In this document: in pieces, positions 8,485 to 40,200 of the stretch
Position numbering within the stretch: position 1 is the first letter of the stretch
Layout of the letters: each line of letters starts with the position of its first letter
Origin: Basidiobolus meristosporus CBS 931.73
Lineage: Eukaryota > Fungi > Basidiobolomycota
Direction: 5' to 3'
Assembly: GCA_002104905.1 (NCBI GenBank)
Contig: MCFE01000362.1
Span: forward strand, 1 to 64,000
Length of the DNA stretch: 64,000 bases
Program-made: the position numbers and the translations under genes
Notes under the pieces: generated by a model
What the model was told of the DNA's origin: nothing
Database searches by the model: none
Seen by the model: only the letters and a program-made list of their open reading frames with translations

Positions 8485-9168
8485 ATGATTCCTACCGCTT
8501 CAACCGCCGCTTGCCCATCCGTCCAGGAGCTTCCACCTTATTCTCCGGGATGCCGTGGGCAGGCCAAGTGCGAAGAGGTTTCTCCTCCAGCTTATAGTGT
8601 AGTTGATTTGCCGATCATTTCTTTCAATCTCAGACTTTCGCATTCTAGCGAACGTTTGCGATCGGTGAACATGCCCGACCTAATAGATATTAGATCTACT
8701 GAAAATAATTTGCCATTGTATTTAGTTAATAAATGCTACTTTAACAATATTACTTCGACCTTTGCTTTAGCCGATTCTTTTACTAATTGTACAGTGGTCC
8801 AAGCCACCAAGGACATCAGGAGGTCCCAGCATTTCGAGATCGAAGGCCACGATACGAATGTGTCCCTGCGGTCGGCGTCATTCTTCCGCGCAGTTTACAA
8901 ATTCACCCTGGACAGCAATACTTTCCGTTGGAGCTTCGACGGGGACAATCTAAGCTGTGAGCTTCTGTCAACTGACCCACAGGGAAGACGTGTGAAGCGC
9001 TCTGTAGGCGGAGTCACATTCTTTGATGAACGGCCATCATCACTATTTGGCCAAGTTTGGATGTTCCAGAGAGCTGGCAACGATGTACTGATCACCACTA
9101 AGTTTGAACAGATTTTCTTGATGACGGCGGTTCTAGTGATGTTCCAAGCAGACAGACTTCAGATATAG
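8485..9168 (+). CDS. Intronless 227-aa protein with N-terminal PY motifs (LPPY, PPAY) and a beta-rich, possibly tubby/LURP-like domain
   Basis: Long ATG-initiated ORF with two PY motifs, alternating beta-strand pattern and a hydrophobic C-terminal helix (IFLMTAVLVM). Confidence 0.65.
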   Translation: MIPTASTAACPSVQELPPYSPGCRGQAKCEEVSPPAYSVVDLPIISFNLRLSHSSERLRSVNMPDLIDIRSTENNLPLYLVNKCYFNNITSTFALADSFTNCTVVQATKDIRRSQHFEIEGHDTNVSLRSASFFRAVYKFTLDSNTFRWSFDGDNLSCELLSTDPQGRRVKRSVGGVTFFDERPSSLFGQVWMFQRAGNDVLITTKFEQIFLMTAVLVMFQADRLQI

Positions 9169-9533
9169 GTACGTTTCCCGGCATCACATTCGTCATTGTT
9201 TATATGCTAATCATTTTCCACCAGTCAAGAACACTTGTCTGCACATCCACTACACATCCACTACACAACCACCTTTACATTCCTAATCACCCAACATTAA
9301 TAAACATGTCTACAAATGATTAAAACGTGATTTACTCCGGAATTCCAAAAAGACCGATCTTTTTTTCGGCCATCGCGGGGCAGATTTAGTAGAGTTCGCA
9401 GGATGTAACCAACGCTGGAGCGTAAAAAAAAATTCACCAGCTTCCCTTTTTTTTTACCTCCCGATTTTTTTCCAGTCGATGCGGTTTTAACGCTACCCGG
9501 TGCACTTTGTCTCCCTTTCACTGCACACCCAAT

Positions 9534-10568
9534 ATGTCCACCGAAGAGATTGTCAAGCAGCCCGAAGTCTCTGGCTTTCAAGATTCCGACGAGGACGAGG
9601 TCATCCTTAATCCCGAGAGCCTCCCCGAGATAAATGTGGCCGAGGTGACGATGGACACGGACGATACCGATAAGCCATCCTTCAGAGCCTTGACTGCGGA
9701 AGAGATGAATGTCAGTACACCACTTCTTCAAACAACCAGCGTAGACGTGGTCACTAACCCTCCACTTTAGTCGGGCAAATCTTCCATGAGAAAGGTCCCC
9801 ATTCCCCCTCACAGAATGGCTCCCCTCAAGGGCAACTGGATCAAACTCTACACCCCACTTGTTGAACACTTGAAGCTCCAAGTTCGTATGAACGTCAAGT
9901 CCAAGTCGGTGGAATTGAAGGTTTGTTCTCGACCCTCTCGCACACAGTCATGTTATTCGGTGGGTGTTCTGATGTTTCTTCCCATCTCGTGTTCAGACCT
10001 CTCCCCACACCGTTGATACCGGTGCTTTGCAAAAGGGAACCGACTTTGTGCGTGCCTTCGCCCTAGGCTTCGACATCGATGTAAGTGATTGCCCTGTGTA
10101 CGGCAGGTTGGGCCGAGTGTACTCACCCCTTTGTTCAGGATGCCTTGGCTTTGCTTAGATTGGACGAGCTCTACATCGATTCGTTCGAAATCAAAGATGG
10201 TAGGTGATCATTGGCCAACTGCATCCCGATCCGAGACTCATCTCCCTCTAGTAAAAACCCTTCACGGCGATCATCTTTCCCGTGCCATTGGTCGTATCGC
10301 CGGTAAGGATGGCAAGACCAAGTTCACCATCGAGAACGCCACCAAGACCAGAATCGTCTTGGCCGACACGTAAGTTCCCACTGACGATGCTTTCCCGGCC
10401 GCCCGACGCTAAACCATCATCCCCAACAGTCGCATTCATATCTTGGGCTCCTTCCAGAACATCAAGATCGCTCGAGATGCGGTGGTCAGCTTGATTTTGG
10501 GTTCCCCTCCAGGCAAGGTCTACTCCACCCTCCGCACCATCTCCGCCAGAATGAAGGAGAGATTCTAA
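9534..10568 (+). CDS. PNO1: Pre-rRNA processing KH-domain protein Pno1/Dim2 (6 exons)
   Basis: Spliced translation includes [73 protein letters not shown] and ARMKERF*. Five GT-AG introns, the first at 9711-9770. Confidence 0.97.
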
Positions 10569-10879
10569 GCGCGCCAAATCCACCAACTTAATTTCGTTCT
10601 GGGCGGGCCGAGGTGCCAATCCCCGGGTCTCCCCACTTCATTTCCGTGCAATCCCTCATTTCTACCGCTTTCTTACAAGGCTTTCTATTATTATGTAATA
10701 TTTGTTTCATCCTAGACTCGTAATAAAGTAACTTGCTTTTGCTTCATGACCGGTGCCCTGATCTTTATATGTATGGATATGCCTGAGCTCACTAGTTGGG
10801 GGATGGTCGGTTGGCTAATTTTCCAAGGAAACAAACAAAACATCCTGCATACCTCTTGGCGCCACAAATCCTGAAGGAT

Positions 10880-11353
10880 GCTGGGTTGGCGTGGGGTCCG
10901 CACTCAACTCTACCACACAGTCTTGTCGTCACTGCCGCTGATGATCACCTCGTTCGTGTGATCCCAGAGCACCGCCCCGTGCCCTTGAAGTCGGTTGAGA
11001 TCGGAGATCTGGTGATTTTTCTCCTGCCCGCTGGTGACGATCGAATCTCCCTCTGTTTCCGCGCAGCGACCGATATGGCCGTAGGGGAACGAATGGAGGG
11101 TCTCTCGGTTGCGAACGTCCCAAACTTTCCTAGAATGGTCCGTGAGTTACAACCGGTGACCGGGAAGATTTTGTGGTGGGCCTATGTACACCCGCCGGGA
11201 TACATATTTCCGTCGAACGTACGCCGTGAAATCCACCCAACCGGTGGCTGCTTTCGTGGCGTCTTTGCTCAGACGAGCCGCCCGTACCGCTCCCTTGTGG
11301 GTCCGTATCAGTACACGTACGAAGCAGGGTGGGGCAGAGGTGGTTCGTGGCAT
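10880..11353 (-). pseudogene. Degenerate STRAP/UNRIP-like WD40 gene fragment retaining an intron
   Basis: HKGAVRAARLSKDATKAATGWVDFTA | intron 11130-11222 (gtacgt..ttctag) | KVWDVRNRETLHSFPYGHI...TSGQEK...ISDLNR...IISGSDDKTV. This resembles STRAP (HKGAVW..LNKDATKAAT..ADFTAKVWD..GQDK..DDKTVRLWD). The N-terminus is missing, it has internal deletions and the frame breaks after DDKTV. Confidence 0.7.
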
Positions 11354-11663
11354 GATGCATTCATAACCCCTCCCCCCAGAGATTTTTTCTGCATCCTTCG
11401 CAATATGTTCCCAACTCCTCAACAATGCTGGGGCGGATATACTGGATCTAACGAACCCACTGCCTTCACGGGATCCCACCCACCCACGTGCGACCTCAAG
11501 CGAACGAACCCGTGTTGTGGCTGGTAAGAGTGGAAATGGCGAGGAACACTAGTCACTTTATGATATATATAAAAGAAAACCATAGAACTGAGAAAGCTGA
11601 ACAAATAAGATTTAGCTCGCAAATGGATGGTGGGGAGGGGAGGAGGTGGGGTAGAGTAGAGTA

Positions 11664-11686
11664 GGGTAGGGTAGGGTAGGGTAGGG
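11664..11686 (+). repeat. (GGGTA)n microsatellite with five G3 tracts, downstream of the CK2 beta stop
   Basis: gggtagggtagggtagggtaggg. Confidence 0.9.
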
Positions 11687-11749
11687 TGGTTGCATTCACT
11701 GACATCTCTCTGAACGATGGGATCGAATCGGGCTATGGCCACGTATCTA

Positions 11750-12688
11750 TCACGAGACGTCCATGTCTCGGCCGTTAAGGCGCTTCTGCTGCTCTTCTCG
11801 AATGCAGTCTTGGAACCTGTGCTGCTTGCTGATCTCGTGCACCTTGAAGCCGAAGATACGGGGGACGTAGCGTTCGGTGGACTTTGGCGGCACCAAGTGG
11901 GCGTACACCTGGAAGAGCATGTGTGGGAAGGAGGAACCGAAGTATGCCCCGTCGATACGTATCGATCCAAAGGGAAAGTGAGGTTAAGGATGATATGGCT
12001 CGGTTGGATGTCTGCATTCAAGTGGTGGATCAATGTTAGGAAGCAAAAGGATATTTGCATGTCTAGAGGATTTTGGGTTGTATATGTCTTCGCATCGACA
12101 GCAATAGAGCTTGACAGATCTTGTGAACGGGACATCGGAGAGACCGACCGGGAGCAGTGGGTGGTTGTAGCAGAGCACACGCGGGCATCTGCCGAACTCG
12201 GCCTTTTTGTACTTCTCCACCTATCGATTGATACCCACACGTTAGTCTCGATACCATGCCATTCATGGACTAAACAGGTGCAGTCGCGAAGCTGGTTTTC
12301 CTTTCTAAAATCATAAGAAACTGTCTACCGACCATCTTGGCGAGACCACGGTTGGTGAGCACGTATCTTGCATGAATGAGGCCGTAGAGATGGCGGGCGG
12401 ACTTCTCGACCGCCTGTCTCAGATCGTCGTCCAGTTCTTCATCTGTGCCCGAGGAATCTGTCAGTGTCAAGTAGGGTTTGGGTGCAGGAAGGTTATGGTA
12501 CCTAAGGAGTCGGTGATGAGATCAAGCGCCTGAACGTAGTGCTGGACCTCGGCATTCAAGCCGGTCAGGTTGAATCTATCCAAAATGTATTCCTCATCCA
12601 CTTCGCAGAAGTACTCGTTTCCTTTGGTGCTCAAGAACCAGTCGACCCAGTATTTCATGTAGTCGCTGTCCGAGTTACTGCTGCTCAT
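11750..12688 (-). CDS. CKB: Casein kinase II regulatory subunit beta (4 exons; third intron is U12-type AT-AC)
   Basis: [78 protein letters not shown]|[26 protein letters not shown]. Confidence 0.97.
11959..12054 (-). other. U12-type (minor spliceosome) AT-AC intron, 96 nt, phase 1
   Basis: 5' site ATATCCTTTT (12054-12045), branch TCCTTAAC (11990-11983), 3' end GATAC (ends at 11959). Removal joins cat gca a + gt atc gac ggg = HASIDG. Confidence 0.93.
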
Positions 12689-13436
12689 ATCATCCACTAG
12701 TGGGAGGGAAGTCGGGTTAGAGAGTTGGCAGTTGATCTGGCCCAAGAGCCGTTCAGGGCAGTGGCCCAGGAGCCTGTTTGGTGGGAAGACAAGAATGGTC
12801 CGCCAGGCCCCATAACGCTCTACTTACTGTTGCTTGTTTCTCAACCACTCGGAACCAGGACTAAGGAAGTATTGAGTATGGAGGTGGGTGGTTGCTTTTG
12901 AGGGGTGGGCGGAGCTAAATTTAGCACTATGATAATATTCTCTTGGTTGTCTCCTGGGTAAAGAAATTCTTCCACCATTGATAAGATATTGGGAAATTGC
13001 CGTAGACAGGGAATTCCCATATTAAACCGAGAAAAATCGACCCATTAGTGAGGGAATCCCGATGATTTAGCCAATACAGTGCATCTGGTGGATGGCCATC
13101 GAGCCAATGATGGCTCGTGAAAGCTTTCGACCAAACTTCAGTTGTCAACATGGAAAAAGCCGATGCTCTAATGAGGCTCGAGGTGCAAGGCTTGCAGGGC
13201 AGCCTGTAAACAAGACAATCATGATGGTTGGTGTTTATGGAGGGTTGTTGGTGCGTGCTACAAAATCGTATTGTACAACAAATCGATGGGATTATGTGCA
13301 ATTTATCAGCGCTGGAGAAGTGTAGTCACACGAACAAGGAAGGGATGGCGGCGGGTGAGTTTAAAAAAGATCGATCATTTATATCACATGCAAAAGTTCA
13401 AGAAATATAGACAATTACAGATGTCATGTCTGACGC

Positions 13437-16400
13437 TTAATTCGTCGTTTCGACGGGTGGTTGGGGGGTAGGCTTCTCTTCCTGGCTGTCGCTTGGGGGA
13501 GGGTTTGCCACTGCAGCATGGTCGCCTGGAACTGGCGCCTGCTTCTCTTCAACCCGCTCCTGGTCCGCGGCGGTCTTTTCGTCCGGCTTGGCCTGCTTGT
13601 TGGTGGTTCTATTGAGTATTTGGGTGGGCAGTGTTAAATGGTTCAATGTTTCTTGGGAGGATTTCTTGTTGACTCCCGACTTGGCCCGGAACGACATCAG
13701 TGATTCGCGAATCCCGGCTACGGAATCCTTTTCTTTGCTCGTTGGAGTGCTGGCCTTGCTTAGAGTTCCGTTGGGTGAGGTGCCGGAATCCTGGCTCTTC
13801 CACCTTCTCCAGCCCTCGAAGTCGATCAGCGCCTGCATGCATCCCCACTCCATGATCTTCTTCTCCAGCCATACAAGCGACACCGGCTTGGTCAAGAAGT
13901 CATTACAGCCCGCAGCCAAGGCGGCGTGACGATCCGATTGCAGGGACGAGGCAGTCAGCGCCAGGATAATCACCGGGGAGCAGAATGGCGAGGTCGGTGA
14001 TGTGGGGTTGGAGCTGTTGTGGGAATTGAAGGATCCGCCACCCAGCACGCCTATCTTCTGCATCTTTTCGATGCTTCGGATTTTCTTCGTCGCCTCGATG
14101 CCGTCCATGACCGGCAATTGGATATCCATCTAAAGTGAGACGGTCCGGTGAGACCAGGTGCTTCGCGCGCAATGTCTAGAGCAACTTACCAGAACCAAAT
14201 GGAATCCGCCCTCCTTCCATTTCTCCACTGCCTCGAGTCCGTTGTTCGCCACGGAGTACTTGATCTTCCGCTTTCTCATAAACGTGGAAAGAATGGTTTG
14301 ATTGATAGGGTTATCTACATTGGTCGGTGAGATATGGGTGAGTGGCGAGGGGGGATTCAGGACGACGCTATTTCACGCTTACCTTCGACGATTAGCACGT
14401 TGATGGGTGGGCTAACTACACTGGACAGGGCAGAGGTTGACTTGGAGGTGTTGCTGGACGGTCTGGATGCTTTCTTTTTCTGGCCGCCCTTCGATTTGGT
14501 CTTGGGTGGTGTGGGGGTTGGTAGAGGCTGGGTTGGGGGAAGCGGGGCCGAGAGCGGAGTGGGCAGAGGGGCGATGCGTGGGATTGGCGAAGCAATCGCT
14601 GGTGCGGGCACGGGGGAGCCTTTGGATCGAGTGATCACCGTAGGAGGCAGAGCGATCGGTTTCCCATTGATCATTGGTGAGCCCAATGGGGGGCGGCCAT
14701 TCGTTCCCGGGGTTGGGACTGGAGTAGTCTTCGACGGGCTTTGGTCCGAGGTTCTACGATTGAGGAAGGGTGTGACACGAGAGAGGGCCGAGACAATCGG
14801 CTTCTGCCCGTTGGAAGCATATTGCTTGGGATCAAAAACGATGGTTCCAGCAATGGGTGTAGCAGTGCCATTATTGGGAGTTGGTACAACCAAGGAGTCC
14901 ATTGACGAGTCGGTCGGGGGGCGGTACGTGTCAAAGTTGATCATGTCCATCGGGTTCTTCTCCTCCTCCTTGGTGTGGTGGTACCGGAGCCCGGGGCTCA
15001 TAGGGGAGGTGGCAATGGGGACATACGAAGGATCGACCTTGGGCTTCATCACTGCAGTGTAGAGGGCGGTCAACAATCTCTTGGGTCCAACTGGTTTGGG
15101 AATCACCAGGACCTGCGGGGGAAGCAGGTGATGAGGCATCATCAGCAGAGAATACACCTCATCCTTGATGAGTTGGTAGTTCGAGAGCGAGGTGAAATGA
15201 ATGATCGATGTTATCAGATGGTTACTCAGGAACTCCATGCGCTTGTGTCTACGGTGCTGGTGGTTCGAGAAGTTGAACGCCGGGTTGTTGCGAAGCGAGA
15301 TGAATTGATCACGCAGAGTCTTCACGTCGTCGTCGATGATGATGAACGAGGGTGGAACATGGAACTTCGAGGCATCCTCGGCAGCCTGACTGCCTTCCAC
15401 CGGAGTTCCGTTGACCGTTTTGGCCCCGTCGCTCGCAGCCGTGGTGGCTGGTGGCTCTGAGGGGGTGTCGATCGAGATGTGGGTGATGTCGGTGCCCCAG
15501 ATGGTGAGACACGAGGTTAGGTGCTTGGCGAAGGTCGAATGGTTCTTGGCGTGGAGGGCAACCTTCAGGCCACGAAGGGTGTTTGAAAAGGAGGTTAACT
15601 CCTTCACGGTGGGTTCATCGGAGATTTTGGGGCGAGATTTTGACTCGTTTGAATCGCGCCCAGCTTTCGGGCGCTCCTCTGATTTCGGGCGTGTCGTGGG
15701 CACCTTGAAAAGCAGGCTGATCGTCTGGCTGGTTTCCTTGCTTTCGATCTGGATCTCGCCGCCCTGCTCCTCGATCAGCTTTTTCGTGAACAGGTCGTTT
15801 GAGTACGGCTCGAGCCTCGATTCTTGGGGTGATGCTTTCGGCGTGTGCACCACTTCGATCGTGCATTGCTGAATGGTCGTCTGTTGCGAATCACGGCCAT
15901 TCTCCAGGTCCGAAGCAAATTGCAGCCCCAGCTCAATGGCTGTGAGCACCTTCGTAGAGGCGATCACCCTCTTGACTGTCTAGAAACAATAGATGAGCAG
16001 CTGAACAGTGAGGTCGCATTGAAAAGATGGGTTCTTACTGTGATCAGTATGTGGCGAAACACTTCCTCGTTCCCAAGCACCCTCGTATGATGCAGGCCGC
16101 TATCACCATGGCATAGGACCAACTCGATGTTTGCCTCGGCTGCGGTGCCAGCGAGTATATCTCCGATGCTTTGAATGAGATCTCCAATTTCGAACTCTGT
16201 CTTCTTGGAGAGAATCGCGCGGAATCGGTGGTTCGTTAGCTTGTCGTTCAGAAACAACTGGCTAATCACGTCCAAATGAGTGGACAAATTGGTGATGTGA
16301 CTGAGAGAGGAGTGTATTGCCGTCACCGAGGCTGTGGGTATTGGAATAGAGCAGGCGGACACATGCTCCTGAGGTTTGAGCAGAAGTTCACGGGGCGAAA

Positions 16401-31273: not shown

Positions 31274-34206
31274 TCAAATTGGTTTGGTCTCAATTGCATC
31301 TTCCAGGATGCCGAACTCTTGCTTGATTTGCGAGATGTGTCGATCCCGTTTGGCCTGGACCACGGAGCGCTTGATCAATGGCTTCAGGGAAACAAATGCG
31401 GTCTACAAACGTACGCTTACTATGCATGTCCACAGATGAGGGGCGTACCAGGACTTACCTTTATCAGTTGATCTACTTGATATGTGCTGAAGGTCATTGA
31501 TTTGAGATAGCCGTACATGCTGGCGCTGGTTTGGCATTTGAGCAGTTTTTTCTCGTTGACCTTAAGTAGTGCGATTGCCACTCGGAAAAGGGTGATCATT
31601 CCCTGCAGGAAAAATATGTCCCATACTCGGAACAGCGTTTCCACCGGGAAACAATCCGTATAGATCGACAGAAACCAGCTGAATGTCACGGCACCAAGAT
31701 CTACCCCTAGCTTACGAAAGTGCTCGTGTAAGCGAGGGAGGATCTCTTTTACCAACTCCTTCAGAACGCGTTGATCCGCTTGGGATACCAATAGTTGTCC
31801 AGTGTAGTAGTCTGGCGGGAGAATATGCTCCAATATACACACAAGCGTCCAGAAAGCATCTTCTTCGTTGGATTGCGTTAGCAACAAGGTCGCGGCGATT
31901 AAGTTCATCCCTTGACAGTATCCAATGGAGGGATTGTGCCTACACGGGAAAGCTCGTTAGCCTAGGAAGAAGGCAGTCAGGGATTGGGAATCCTACCAGC
32001 TGTAGGCCACGAGTATCCTTCGCAGCTTTTCCACTCCATTTCCGTTTTCTCCGAAGAAAATGTTGTTGGGAAGCGTTCGATGTAGATCCTTATGATACGA
32101 AAGGGGGCAACGTTAGTGGGTCCGCTATCACCCAATTGCACAAAGGGATAAGAGGGTGGAGTGGGCAGTCCGATTGCGACATGACAAAAAACCAAATGCT
32201 TCGAGACATACCAGTTCGATTTGTCCCAAAAATACGGATTCTTGACCTTCGTGTCGAGCCAAGAGGGCAGAATAATATCCTGGCTCTTTACGTTCAAACG
32301 CACCAGAGCATTCTCCCCAGATTTTTGCTCTGTACACCGCTGGAATGCCACCACGAATCAACTTCTTGAATTCCTTGTATTCCACTTCCCCCATTCTAGC
32401 AAGGCACAGCCCTTCAACTATGACCGTTTCGCCATCATCGCTGATCTCCTTGGCCACTGCAGCTTTTCTTCGCTCGATGAAGATATCCCACTTGTCTTTT
32501 TGAGGAGCCTCGGGAATGTCTTGGGTGTCGATCAATTGAGAAAGTAGCACATGCGGGTTGTGCACAGAGTCTGAGCTTTGCGCAGCTCTGGCCGTTGGTA
32601 GAGTCGGTGAGGTCGAGGGAGAGTGAATGACAAGTCCCTTATTTCCGGTAGAGCTCGGTAGCGAAGAGTCGAAATAAAAGCCGTAACGGTCCGTGGGATA
32701 TGGTGCCTCCTGTCTAACGAGGGATAATTGGGAGTATCGGTTGATGGGTTTGAGTTCCAGAAGAGTGGCTTTGTCTTGGCCTTTTTGGGCGTTAACCACA
32801 GGTTTGATCACCGAGTCGCTCACTAATAGGCTTTGCTTCGCCTTAACATGATTCACCTCTGGTACGCTGGGTAACTCATCCATAGTGGTACGATCATCAA
32901 GCTCAAAATTATCAAGATAAACGGAGTTTCTAGATCTTACATTAAGTTCTCGACAAAACGCCGTTTCACTCCCCGGGAATGTGTTGAAGATGCTTGGTTT
33001 TCGCTTTTTTTCTCCATTGAGCAAGCCAATGGTCCAGCGAGCGATCAAATTGGATGTTCTTTTCGAGTAGAGCTTGTCAGATGAGCTGCCATCCACGCTT
33101 AGTAGTCTGGCTGCCAGCGTAATGGCCTTATAATGGAGGGGTTGTGGTACAGGTTCGAGGTTTGATGAGGTGAATATGTCTTCTAATGATAGTGCTTGGT
33201 TTGAGCAAGGGGCCTTGGCTTGCCAGTTGCCACTGCCTTCATCTACGGAAGAGGAATAGACATCAGGGAAAAGTGTTGATCTACTGCCGTTAGTACTAGG
33301 TTCTCGACACTCCTTGGGGTCTGGTAAACCATGTACTGCGCTATTGGTGTCCTCAGCTGCGTTTGGCGCTGTCTTTGATTTCCATTGAAGAAGGCCCACT
33401 GTCCATTTTTCTATGGACGCTCGAACTGGCATTTGAAATCGAGGAGAACGAAGTGGAGAGGGTAGACTGTTGGATTTTGAGGGGCTTTTGGTATATGTTA
33501 ATTGCGTAGAGGAGGCTGAAAGTGAGCTGGATCGACGAAAAGGCGTACCAGGGGCAGAGGAGGAAGGCTGCTTCTGAACAGTCTCGGCAGGGAGATTATG
33601 AGAATCCCCATCCGGAAACCAGTCAGAATCCGTATCTATCTCAGGATCTAGTGGCTTTTGAGTAGTAGGTACAAAAGGATGTTTGTGGAGATGCTTGTTA
33701 AGGTACGAGTCGCTGGTGGAATGCTTTAATCGGGACCACTCCTCTCGAATATTTTTAATCTCTGTTTCTTTTTCGGCGATCAGGTTATGTGCTCGACGGA
33801 GGTCTGAGCAGCAGGATTTAAGGATACGCCGAATCAGAGCCGGCGAGCTTGTGGCGACCAGTTTGTTGAGAGCTGCATCTGAGAGTAGATGGATGTTCGA
33901 GAAAGGCAGTTGAGAATCGATATCTGACTCTTCATCAAAACTGTGTAGATCTGAATCTTGAGTACTCACTGAGAAAGGTCGGCTGTATCTTTGCCCCTTG
34001 AAATCCACTGAGCCCGTATAACTGCAGCTATCGCTAATAGAATCGATGTCCAAGGGTCTATCGCTCTCGGTATCTGATTCGGATAATGGGTGTTTGTCGG
34101 TTGCCTTCGATAGCAGGCACGATAGAGGAGAGGTTAGCAAGTTGGTATTCCTCTCACAAGCCGTGACCACAGAATTCGTAGCAGTGCTCGTGCTCGAATT
34201 TGACAT
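31274..34206 (-). CDS. TBC-domain Rab GTPase-activating protein with a long low-complexity N-terminus (4 exons)
   Basis: DRYGF, FKKLIRGGIPAVYRAKIWGECSGA, QIEL|DLHRTLPNNIFF, AYSW|HNPSIGYCQGMNLIAA, EEDAFW, FRVWDIFFLQG. Confidence 0.93.
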
Positions 34207-35071
34207 TACTGTATTCTCGGATGGAGCGCTTTCACGGGATAACACAAGGCTGAATTTGAAGTGCGTTGGTTTGGAATTTCTTCAAAATATCCCCCTGAAG
34301 AAGTGGTGAAGCCAAGACACACCGGAAATGAAAGTGAGCAAGAATTTTTTGCGATATCAATGAGGTTGAAAGGAGATGGTGTGTATTTGTGCGTATCTAG
34401 TAGGAATACTAGAGAATGCGTATTAGAATGAAGACTTGTTAAGTATTAGAAATGAATAAGATGAGGCAAAACTGGAGTAGAAAAGTCAGAGAATCGACCG
34501 TCGATATTTGATACGGACGTAAACCAAAGTCGACTACAGATATTTAGCAGCAAGAAAGGCCAATGGAGGGCAAAGGGAGGTTAATTGTCCGATCTAAAAT
34601 GTATATAGTATATTCATGGCTCTCGGTCTTATCCCTAATGAATCGTTCCTGGGCGATTGAAGGACAATATGGCAATTTAGTAATGGGAGTAGGATTTTGG
34701 GTTCGACAAGCGTAAAGGTGTAAAAGAGGTATTCTAGGTGGGAAGTCCCTATTTTGTGAGCCCATCCAACGTGAGATAATTTGTTAATGCAGATTGCATT
34801 CATCCGCCTAATAACATCATTCCCAATCAAATAGATCACCCTGACCAGTTACCATTTGAAACGGAAAATACTCTGACTAGCTCACCCAATATCAACAATA
34901 AATCGATTGACTGTTCATTTAATTTACTGCGTATTCACCCATATTTATCAGTGGATGACAATACATATATATGCATTCAATCCCGCACTCAATCCCACGC
35001 TCAATTCAGATATAATTCTTGACCTTCGCTACTAGACAGCTGGTCGTTGCGAGTTCGCATTTATTTTGAAT

Positions 35072-37259: not shown

Positions 37260-40200
37260 TGTTGTAAGAGTCTTGGAGATATTGGAAGTGATTAGGAGAA
37301 CAAGTAGATTATGTGGTTTTCACTTAATGATTTATTGAATGTAAAAGTAGTATTTATACTTTTACCTGGTCTTGGCATTACAAACACATGTAGAATAGGT
37401 TAAGGAAGGTCCCAAGAACATGTGTGCAAAGTTTGGGGCTGTTTGGACAACTTTGAGAATTTTCATGCTCTGGGTACCTGGTATTTTGGTGAAAATATTC
37501 TAAGTAAATCCCAACAAGGAATTTGGTCAGTATTCTCTAGGATATGAAGGTAATGATCTAAGTGACTAAGTTAGGTAAATATTTAGGTGGAAATACAAAT
37601 TTTTACAACACTCCCACTCAGCTAAATGTTCATACTGACTAGTCCTAATTTTGACCTAAAATATTCAAACTTGTCTCTAGCTCAATGGTTTGGTAAATAT
37701 GTCTGCAATCATTCCATCTGTAGGACAGTAAACTAAGCTAACTAATTTATTCTCTATAGCTTCACGTATGAAATGATGTCAAATATCTATGTGCTTGGTT
37801 CTAGCATGAAAAGTTGGATTTCTACCTAATTGTATACATCCTTGATTATCTTGAAATAAAGTAATAGGCATTTTATGACATAGGCCTAAATCTGTAAAAA
37901 GCTTTCTTAACCACATTGCTTCTTTTGTAGCTTCACAGGCTGCCTTATAATCTGCCTCTGTGGTAGAAAGTGCTACAGTTGGTTGCTTTCTTCAGTTCCA
38001 TGAAATTGCTCCTTTGCAGTAAAGAAAGGTGTATCTTGTGGTGGATCTTCTGTCTTCCAAATTTTGTCCCCAATCAGCATCAGAGTATCCCACAAGATCC
38101 TCTTCTGAATCCTTATAAGTGTATCTTAAGCAGATATCAGCAGTTCCTTTTAGGTATCTAAAAATCTGCTTAACTGCTGCAATATGATCAGATCCATAGT
38201 ACTGATTATGTTGGCTGACAACTCCCACTGAATATGAGATATCTGGACGTGTTTCAAGCATGGTATACATCAGACTGCCTACCATAGATTGCTAAGGAAA
38301 GTCAGGGCTTTCAGATGGCACCAGGCTCTCTCAATTTGGTTGAGTTTTGACCAAGTTAAGGTTTGTCTCCATTGGGGTAGCTGCCGGTTTACAGTCTTGC
38401 ATTTGGCACTTCTTTAGTATATCTTGAATATACTTGGATTGGCTTAGGGTGATAGTCTGGGTACTTCTGTCTATGGAGAACTTAATTGCCTAAGTAGTAT
38501 TAAGTTCTCCTAGATTGGACATCTTGAACTCCTTAGATAGGCTGGATTTTGTCTATTCCAATGTTTCTAGGTTATTGGTGGCTACAATAAGATCATCCAC
38601 ATATAGAGCTAATAGAACTGGATTTGCTCTATCTGGCTTATAGTATATACTATAGTCAGCATTACTCCTTTTGAAACTCAAAGATTCCAAATAAGAATCT
38701 ATCTTGCAATTCCAGGCTCTTGGTGATAGTTTGAGACCATATAGTGACTTTTTAAGCTTGCAGACCAAATGGGATTTTCTTGGTAAACAAACCCATCAGG
38801 CTGGTCCATATACATGTCCTCATCAAGTTCTCCATTCAAAAATGCAGCTTTTACATCCATTTGATGAATAAAAACTTATATTTGGCTGCAATAGCCAATA
38901 TTAATCTGATGGAATTAAACTTGGCTACCGGTGCAAAGGTCTCAGTATAGTCAAGTCCTTTTGTTTGAGAGTAATCCTTGGGCTACAAGTCTTGCTTTGT
39001 ATCTTTCGATTGTACCATTAGCCTTGTATTTTGTCTTGAAGACCCATCTGCATCCAATTGATTTTCCATCAGGGTCTGATATTCCTTAGTCATTGCAGGT
39101 CTCCAAAACTTTGTCTGAGGGCTATTTAGGGCCTCTTTTACAGTCTGGGGTTCATCAATATGGACTGAATAGGCATAGGCTAAGTTTGTACCCTCATTGA
39201 TATAGTAATTTGGGCTATTTCTTGTCCAATTGGATCTCTGGCATTTGATTCTGGAATGATCACTTCTGGGATATTCCTTGGCACTGATTCTGGCTGAACC
39301 ATGGTTGTAGAGTCCTCTGGAGTGAAAAAACTTCATTGTTTTGCTCTGATTCAATCCTGACAATTGGTGGATTTGAGATCAGATTTTTGTCATCTTCCAA
39401 TGTAATTTTTTGTGAGAATTTTAAATTTTCATCAAACAACACATCCATGGACTTGCTTAGCTTCTTTGCCTTGGGATTGTAGAGTCTGTATGCTTTACTC
39501 TCATTGTAGTAGTCCAAAAATATGATTTTACACTTTTTGGCTCAAATTTTGACTGATTTCCAGGCAGTTTCTTGACATATGCTCTACACCCAAATATTCT
39601 TAGATGTTCTGCACTTGGTCTATATCCATACCATGCTTCAAATGGAGTAGAATCACAAAGTATTCTGTTATAGCTCCTATTTTTAAGGTATACAGCAGTG
39701 GCAACTGATTCCACCCAAAAATCATAGGATATTTTTTGATTGTGGATCATCAATCTTGCCATATCAATTATTGATCTGTTATCATGTTCTGCTACTCCAT
39801 TTTGCTGTGGGGAGTATGGTACAGCAGTCTCTTGCTTTATCCCATGAATTTTGCAGAAGTGGATGAAGAGTTTTGAGGTATATTTTCCACCATTGTCAGA
39901 GTGTATTTTCTTGATTTTTTCACCAGTTTCTCTCTCCACCATGGCTTTAAACTCCCTGAACTTAGACAGAACTTCTTCCTTTCTCTCCATGAAGTAGACC
40001 CATGTGTATCTTGTATAATCATCAGTAAAAGTGATTAAATACTTCATCCCGCCTAAGGATATATTTTGCATAGGTTCACACAGATCTGAGTTGAATTAGA
40101 TCTAATTTTTGCTTAGTTTTGATTAGCCCAGAGCTCTTGAACGGTTGTCTGGCATGTTTCCCATATATTGCAGCCTGCACAGTGCTCCAAATTAGCTGGG

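Follow-up and report, generated by a model that had tools for sequence, protein, structure and literature searches.

The window, the first 64,000 nucleotides of contig MCFE01000362.1 from Basidiobolus meristosporus CBS 931.73, encodes on its minus strand the regulatory subunit of casein kinase II (CK2 beta). The locus of 7,079 nt from MCFE01000362.1 is identical to window positions 8750-15828, and the numbering of the record is also that of the window. The public protein of this gene, ORX90732.1 (P0271 in our set), is identical to all four coding exons. When these exons were searched singly against the Pfam profile PF01214 (CK_II_beta), each scored above the curated cut-off of 27 bits; the exons were submitted one by one, and full-length comparisons were made with the public protein P0271. 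The features of the gene are collected in the table.

Features of the CK2 beta gene and of its predicted AT-AC intron (window positions unless a locus is named)
Feature	Position	Strand	Remarks
CK2 beta (casein kinase II regulatory subunit) gene	11750..12828	-	ORX90732.1 / K493DRAFT_317753, 226 aa; range in MCFE01000362.1
5' GT-AG intron of the public model	12697..12827	-	start codon split A|TG (A 12828; TG 12696-12695), giving MDDMSSS
Coding exon, TG of start codon to DSL + first base of Asp	12502..12696	-	PF01214 positions 2-48, E 5.7e-16
U2-type GT-AG intron	12443..12501	-	59 nt, phase 1, position common to other fungi
Coding exon, EELDDDL...GLAKM	12333..12442	-	PF01214 positions 55-88
U2-type GT-AG intron	12221..12332	-	112 nt, phase 0, position common to other fungi
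Coding exon 3, VEKYKK...KSSRHA + first base of Ser	12055..12220	-	PF01214 positions 89-142, E 1.6e-20
Predicted U12-type AT-AC intron	11959..12054	-	96 nt, phase 1; sole donor/acceptor pair reproducing the protein
Putative U12 5' splice site ATATCCTTTT	12045..12054	-	100% conserved in four Basidiobolus copies
Putative U12 branch-point box TCCTTAAC	11983..11990	-	100% conserved in four copies; holds TAA 11986-11984, which ends the retained-intron frame
Branch-box-to-3'-end spacer	window 11983-11959; L001 3901-3921; L003 2398-2428; L004 2455-2477		62-74% pyrimidine
Terminal AC of intron	11959..11960	-	25 nt 3' of the branch box's second A
Last coding exon, GT of Ser codon, IDGAYFG...DMDVS, stop	11750..11958	-	PF01214 positions 145-182

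Relatives of the protein were found by a HMMER search with exon 3, as word searches from single-exon references miss full-length proteins. The relatives obtained in this way carry SSRH, two residues and then IDGAYFG, and two of them read exactly SSRHASIDGAYFG. A word search started from the best HMMER hit revealed a cluster of 226-aa proteins composed of ORX90732.1 and ORX89222.1 from B. meristosporus CBS 931.73 and of two proteins from B. ranarum. The public models of the four Basidiobolus genes have a start codon split A|TG across a GT-AG intron (131 nt, 12697-12827, in the window), and the first block of exact agreement with the protein begins at residue 2 in each of the four loci (window, L001, L003 and L004). 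The next in-frame ATG, at 12688-12686, would give MSSS. That the split start is common to the models hints that transcripts guided those of B. meristosporus, and the B. meristosporus proteins may in turn have served as templates for the B. ranarum models. In the 3' untranslated region (11640-11700, minus strand), we also noted a short run of CCCTA/CTCTA pentamers (ccctaccctaccctaccctaccctactctactctacc).

A large response-regulator gene with a receiver domain lies upstream of CK2 beta, at 13437-14129 and further upstream on the minus strand of the window, and a gene of this kind is found at both B. ranarum loci. At the B. meristosporus paralogue locus (L001), the upstream neighbour is instead a sulfate transporter and the downstream one an eIF3I-like WD40 gene. 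This difference in neighbours between L001 and the loci L002, L003 and L004 suggests that a segment or the whole genome was duplicated and later rearranged.

Exon 3 ends with AAA TCC TCT AGA CAT GCA A, encoding KSSRHA and the first base of the next codon, and is followed by ATATCCTTTTGC. The donor is an exact match to the U12 consensus ATATCCTT, the branch box is an exact match to TCCTTAAC (TCCTTRAY), and the intron ends in ...GGATCGATAC at 11959, that is, in ...GATAC. Removal of 12054-11959 brings A (12055) next to GT (11958-11957), forming the serine codon AGT and the product ...SSRHA-S-IDGAYFG. On the PF01214 profile, exon 3 stops at position 142 and exon 4 resumes at 145; this gap is filled exactly by the final exon-3 residue plus the split codon, so that the junction creates neither an insertion nor a deletion. 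Exhaustive pairing of donors and acceptors against the annotated protein returned a single solution per locus, an AT-AC pair in phase 1, at all four Basidiobolus loci. If the AT-AC pair of the window is moved by a single base, Asn or Arg takes the place of the junction Ser, and no in-frame GT-AG alternative exists, with no suitable GT in the donor region and no AG ahead of the acceptor. Both other introns within the CK2 beta coding sequence are ordinary GT-AG introns. If 12054-11959 were retained, the frame would end at the TAA within the branch box, leaving a 78-aa ORF (11984..12220).

The original prediction, made on this DNA from its letters, had described a frame break after SSRHA, the two U12 motifs, intron ends at 11959 and 12054 and a restored HAS-IDGAYFG, and all of these statements are borne out. 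Its expectation that retention would truncate CK2 beta agrees with the stop in the branch box, and its reading of the remaining introns as U2 GT-AG is true of both others inside the CK2 beta coding sequence. It had also expected GT-AG-only predictors to mis-model the gene and called the intron hidden. The intron is not hidden: ORX90732.1 and three sister models read SSRHASIDGAYFG, which only the exact AT-AC junction yields; the public protein thus requires the 12054/11959 junction, and the public models already splice there.

Taken one at a time, the U12 motifs occur at chance frequency in the 64-kb window, with three matches to ATATCCTT and two to TCCTTAAC. The chance expectation for a donor followed by a branch box within 30-200 nt is 0.007 per window. 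Two further candidates were rejected. A GTATCCTT at 33827 (minus strand) is a chance match inside a continuous 705-aa ORF (32128-34245, minus strand), in frame with it, which shows that a U12 donor word by itself can turn up by chance within a coding region; this ORF, to go by its C-terminal part alone, is apparently a TBC/RabGAP-type gene. The other candidate, at 37390-37545 on the minus strand, has a U12-like geometry, with ATATCCTA at 37545, TCCTTAAC 139 nt after it and an AC (37390) 9 nt past the box; it is AT-rich, has no evident coding role and is probably also due to chance. Immediately upstream of this candidate, a copia-like retrotransposon pol frame (...ADIFTKPL...) comes to its end.

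An AT-AC intron is located at the same site in the B. meristosporus paralogue and in both CK2 beta copies of B. ranarum, and the four introns measure 96, 100, 84 and 92 nt. Alignment of the four copies revealed 100% identity for ATATCCTTTT, TCCTTAAC and the terminal AC, while in the same alignment identity is 36% from the donor to the branch box, 38% in the spacer beyond the box and 82-85% in the exon flanks. The comparison thus provides a clean phylogenetic footprint, in which conservation within the intron is confined to the donor box, branch box and terminal AC. This pattern is the one expected if selection acts only on the sites that would pair with U11/U6atac and U12 and on the acceptor. 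The comparison also shows that the shared intron was present before CK2 beta was duplicated and before B. meristosporus and B. ranarum diverged.

The distance between the branch box and the 3' end is unusual for this class. Counted from the second A of the box, the 3' end lies 25 nt away in the window and 22, 24 and 32 nt away in the other Basidiobolus copies, which is about twice the optimum of 11-13 nt reported for U12 introns from measurements in animals. This distance is an efficiency property of U12 introns and not a criterion of class. In three of the four copies, the AC used is the first AC or AG located more than 6 bases past the branch box; in the B. ranarum orthologue, an AG stands three bases ahead of the AC used. 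Once base composition is taken into account, AC and AG are not significantly avoided between the branch box and the 3' end (P of 0.14-0.56 in the individual copies). The long spacing may mark young introns or may reflect a relaxed distance rule in Basidiobolus, and it bears on how strict this rule is outside animals.

The spacing also favors, to some extent, two other readings of the junction. A different 3' site might be used in vivo, for example that of an AT-AT pair ending at 11965, 6 nt upstream, which keeps the frame (HA-T-I-R-IDG) and lies 19 nt from the branch adenosine, nearer the usual range than 25 nt; reviews moreover describe the choice of U12 3' sites as error-prone. However, the two residues that this junction would add are missing from all relatives and from the Pfam profile, and conservation across the four copies covers the terminal AC but not the upstream AT, so we judge the use of such a site very improbable. 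U2-type AT-AC introns also exist, although they are rare, and a branch-to-3' spacing of 22-32 nt with a spacer of 62-74% pyrimidine is more U2-like than U12-like. Yet U2-type AT-AC introns carry U2-like donors, whereas here the donor ATATCCTTTT and the box TCCTTAAC are those of the U12 consensus and are, together with the terminal AC, the sole conserved parts of the intron; in addition, both other introns of the coding sequence display the ordinary GT...AG signals. Removal of the AT-AC intron by the major spliceosome instead of the minor one is accordingly hard to credit, even more so than a displaced 3' site.

We therefore read 12054-11959 (minus strand), in one of the two B. meristosporus CK2 beta paralogues, as very probably a genuine U12-type AT-AC intron. 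The donor, the branch box, the AT...AC termini, the unique junction and the conservation in four copies all point to the class that the original prediction had assigned. The intron is in phase 1, the phase favored by minor introns, and its host gene is old and conserved, as are those of the U12 introns catalogued in B. meristosporus. These catalogued U12 AT-AC introns (PMC10639083, PMC11347168) come from the same organism and share with the CK2 beta intron the consensus donor ATATCCTT, the box TCCTTAAC and the AT-AC termini; the CK2 beta intron differs in having its box 22-32 nt from the 3' end and not at the 11-13 nt optimum.

Recognition by the minor spliceosome would proceed in several steps. 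In such introns, the U11/U12 di-snRNP recognizes the donor and the branch box jointly, and U6atac later replaces U11. In the CK2 beta transcript, U11 snRNA, and later U6atac, would pair with the donor ATATCCTTTT, while U12 snRNA would pair with TCCTTAAC and bulge a branch adenosine. This adenosine would attack the donor, and the first usable AC downstream of the branch box would serve as the acceptor. Excision would then join A(12055) to GT(11958-11957) and restore the conserved C-terminal portion of the regulatory subunit, ...SSRHA-S-IDGAYFG.... A search for RNA sequencing runs over 11500-12900 gave no entry. From the signals and their conservation, we infer that 12054-11959 is removed in vivo by the minor spliceosome.

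In each of the four Basidiobolus copies, a retained intron would stop the frame early. The intron might therefore act as a throttle on CK2 beta, if it were frequently retained and the outcome were a truncated protein or a degraded transcript; U12 introns of animals are described as often slowly spliced. Stops in retained introns are, however, expected by chance, and for Rhizophagus the published survey found minor splicing not to be linked to proliferation and argued for neutral explanations. We consider such a throttle improbable. The original prediction further proposed that CK2 holoenzyme levels could be limited by slow U12 splicing, which is speculation.

A working minor spliceosome in this genome, also deduced in the original prediction, agrees with the conserved signals and with the literature, and as a new conclusion it had been anticipated, since the richness of this fungus in minor introns is already published. 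Larue and Roy (2023; PMC10639083) counted 249 minor introns in B. meristosporus (0.554%), which is the record among fungi. Olthof et al. (2024; PMC11347168) counted 237 and reported U11, U12 and U6atac genes together with a putative divergent U4atac. In the 64-kb window itself, no minor snRNA gene was detected by Rfam matches at gathering thresholds, nor was any other Rfam family. From its place in the public annotation, the CK2 beta intron presumably belongs to the published survey sets, and our literature search found no paper joining CSNK2B with 'minor intron'. The intron is correctly annotated already, its host is a fungus whose wealth of minor introns has been published, and it is an ordinary and known case. 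Alone, the finding matters little: it confirms the public model and adds one example to a fungus known for its minor introns.

Some public CK2 beta entries from other eukaryotes, exon-level fragments or mis-spliced sequences, also contain breaks at or close to the SSRHA|S site. Compared with its relative L053, the entry P0099 has a clean 12-residue insertion at RHR[...]GIDG, and only a 36-nt GT...AG intron, in phase 1 and in the same codon, would explain this insertion canonically. In P0123, P0125, P0136, P0110 and P0135, RH-x-S is followed by junk, whose back-translation gives A|GT GAG... and similar donors. Several such entries fit a GT intron at the exact Basidiobolus position, as far as peptides, and not DNA, can indicate. 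Other breaks were observed nearby: a retained insertion directly after RH in P0041, a short retained insertion in the Asp codon in the basidiomycete-type protein P0025, and a break two codons beyond the SSRHA|S site in animal-type CK2 beta fragments. Altogether, the breaks in P0099, P0123, P0125, P0136, P0110, P0135, P0041, P0025 and P0053-P0056 fall within about 6 nt of the site, at four positions or phases. To judge from these entries, the CK2 beta region around SSRHA|S looks like an intron hot spot. Several metagenome loci (e.g. L033, L037 and L057) encode the animal-type motif ...SSRHHHTDGAYFG, and some of these animal-type loci may be of human origin.

In the orthologue comparison proposed with the original prediction, the same AT-AC intron is present in the four Basidiobolus copies and absent from nine other fungal CK2 beta genes. 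No intron was found at the SSRHA|S site in Rhizophagus irregularis, Gigaspora rosea, Bifiguratus adelaidae, Syncephalis, Coemansia, Phycomyces nitens, Paraphysoderma and Gonapodya, nor in the fungal metagenome contig L038. The CK2 beta proteins of other early-diverging fungi are 65-83% identical to that of Basidiobolus, and the GT-AG positions after DSL (phase 1) and after AKM (phase 0) are common to several of these fungi. All 76 metagenome loci with both anchors are contiguous at the site, a weak indication given that many are short transcript-like contigs and that the best unbroken matches were kept. No CK2 beta orthologue from Entomophthoromycotina was present among the best 120 matches in either word search.

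Given its absence from the nine genes, the intron was either gained or has outlasted repeated losses. That it was created within the Basidiobolus lineage, earlier than the gene duplication and the species split, and did not descend from the fungal ancestor, is a tentative reading that we hold to be possible and on balance doubtful. The survey of minor introns (PMC10639083) contrasts a low reconstructed ancestral density in Zoopagomycota with the record density in Basidiobolus, and this low ancestral value keeps a Basidiobolus gain plausible. The absence of the intron from the nine fungal genes bears on whether Basidiobolus gained minor introns. To our knowledge, a clear gain of minor introns has so far been described only for Physarum; a gain in Basidiobolus, if true, would be a concrete case of minor-intron gain in fungi.
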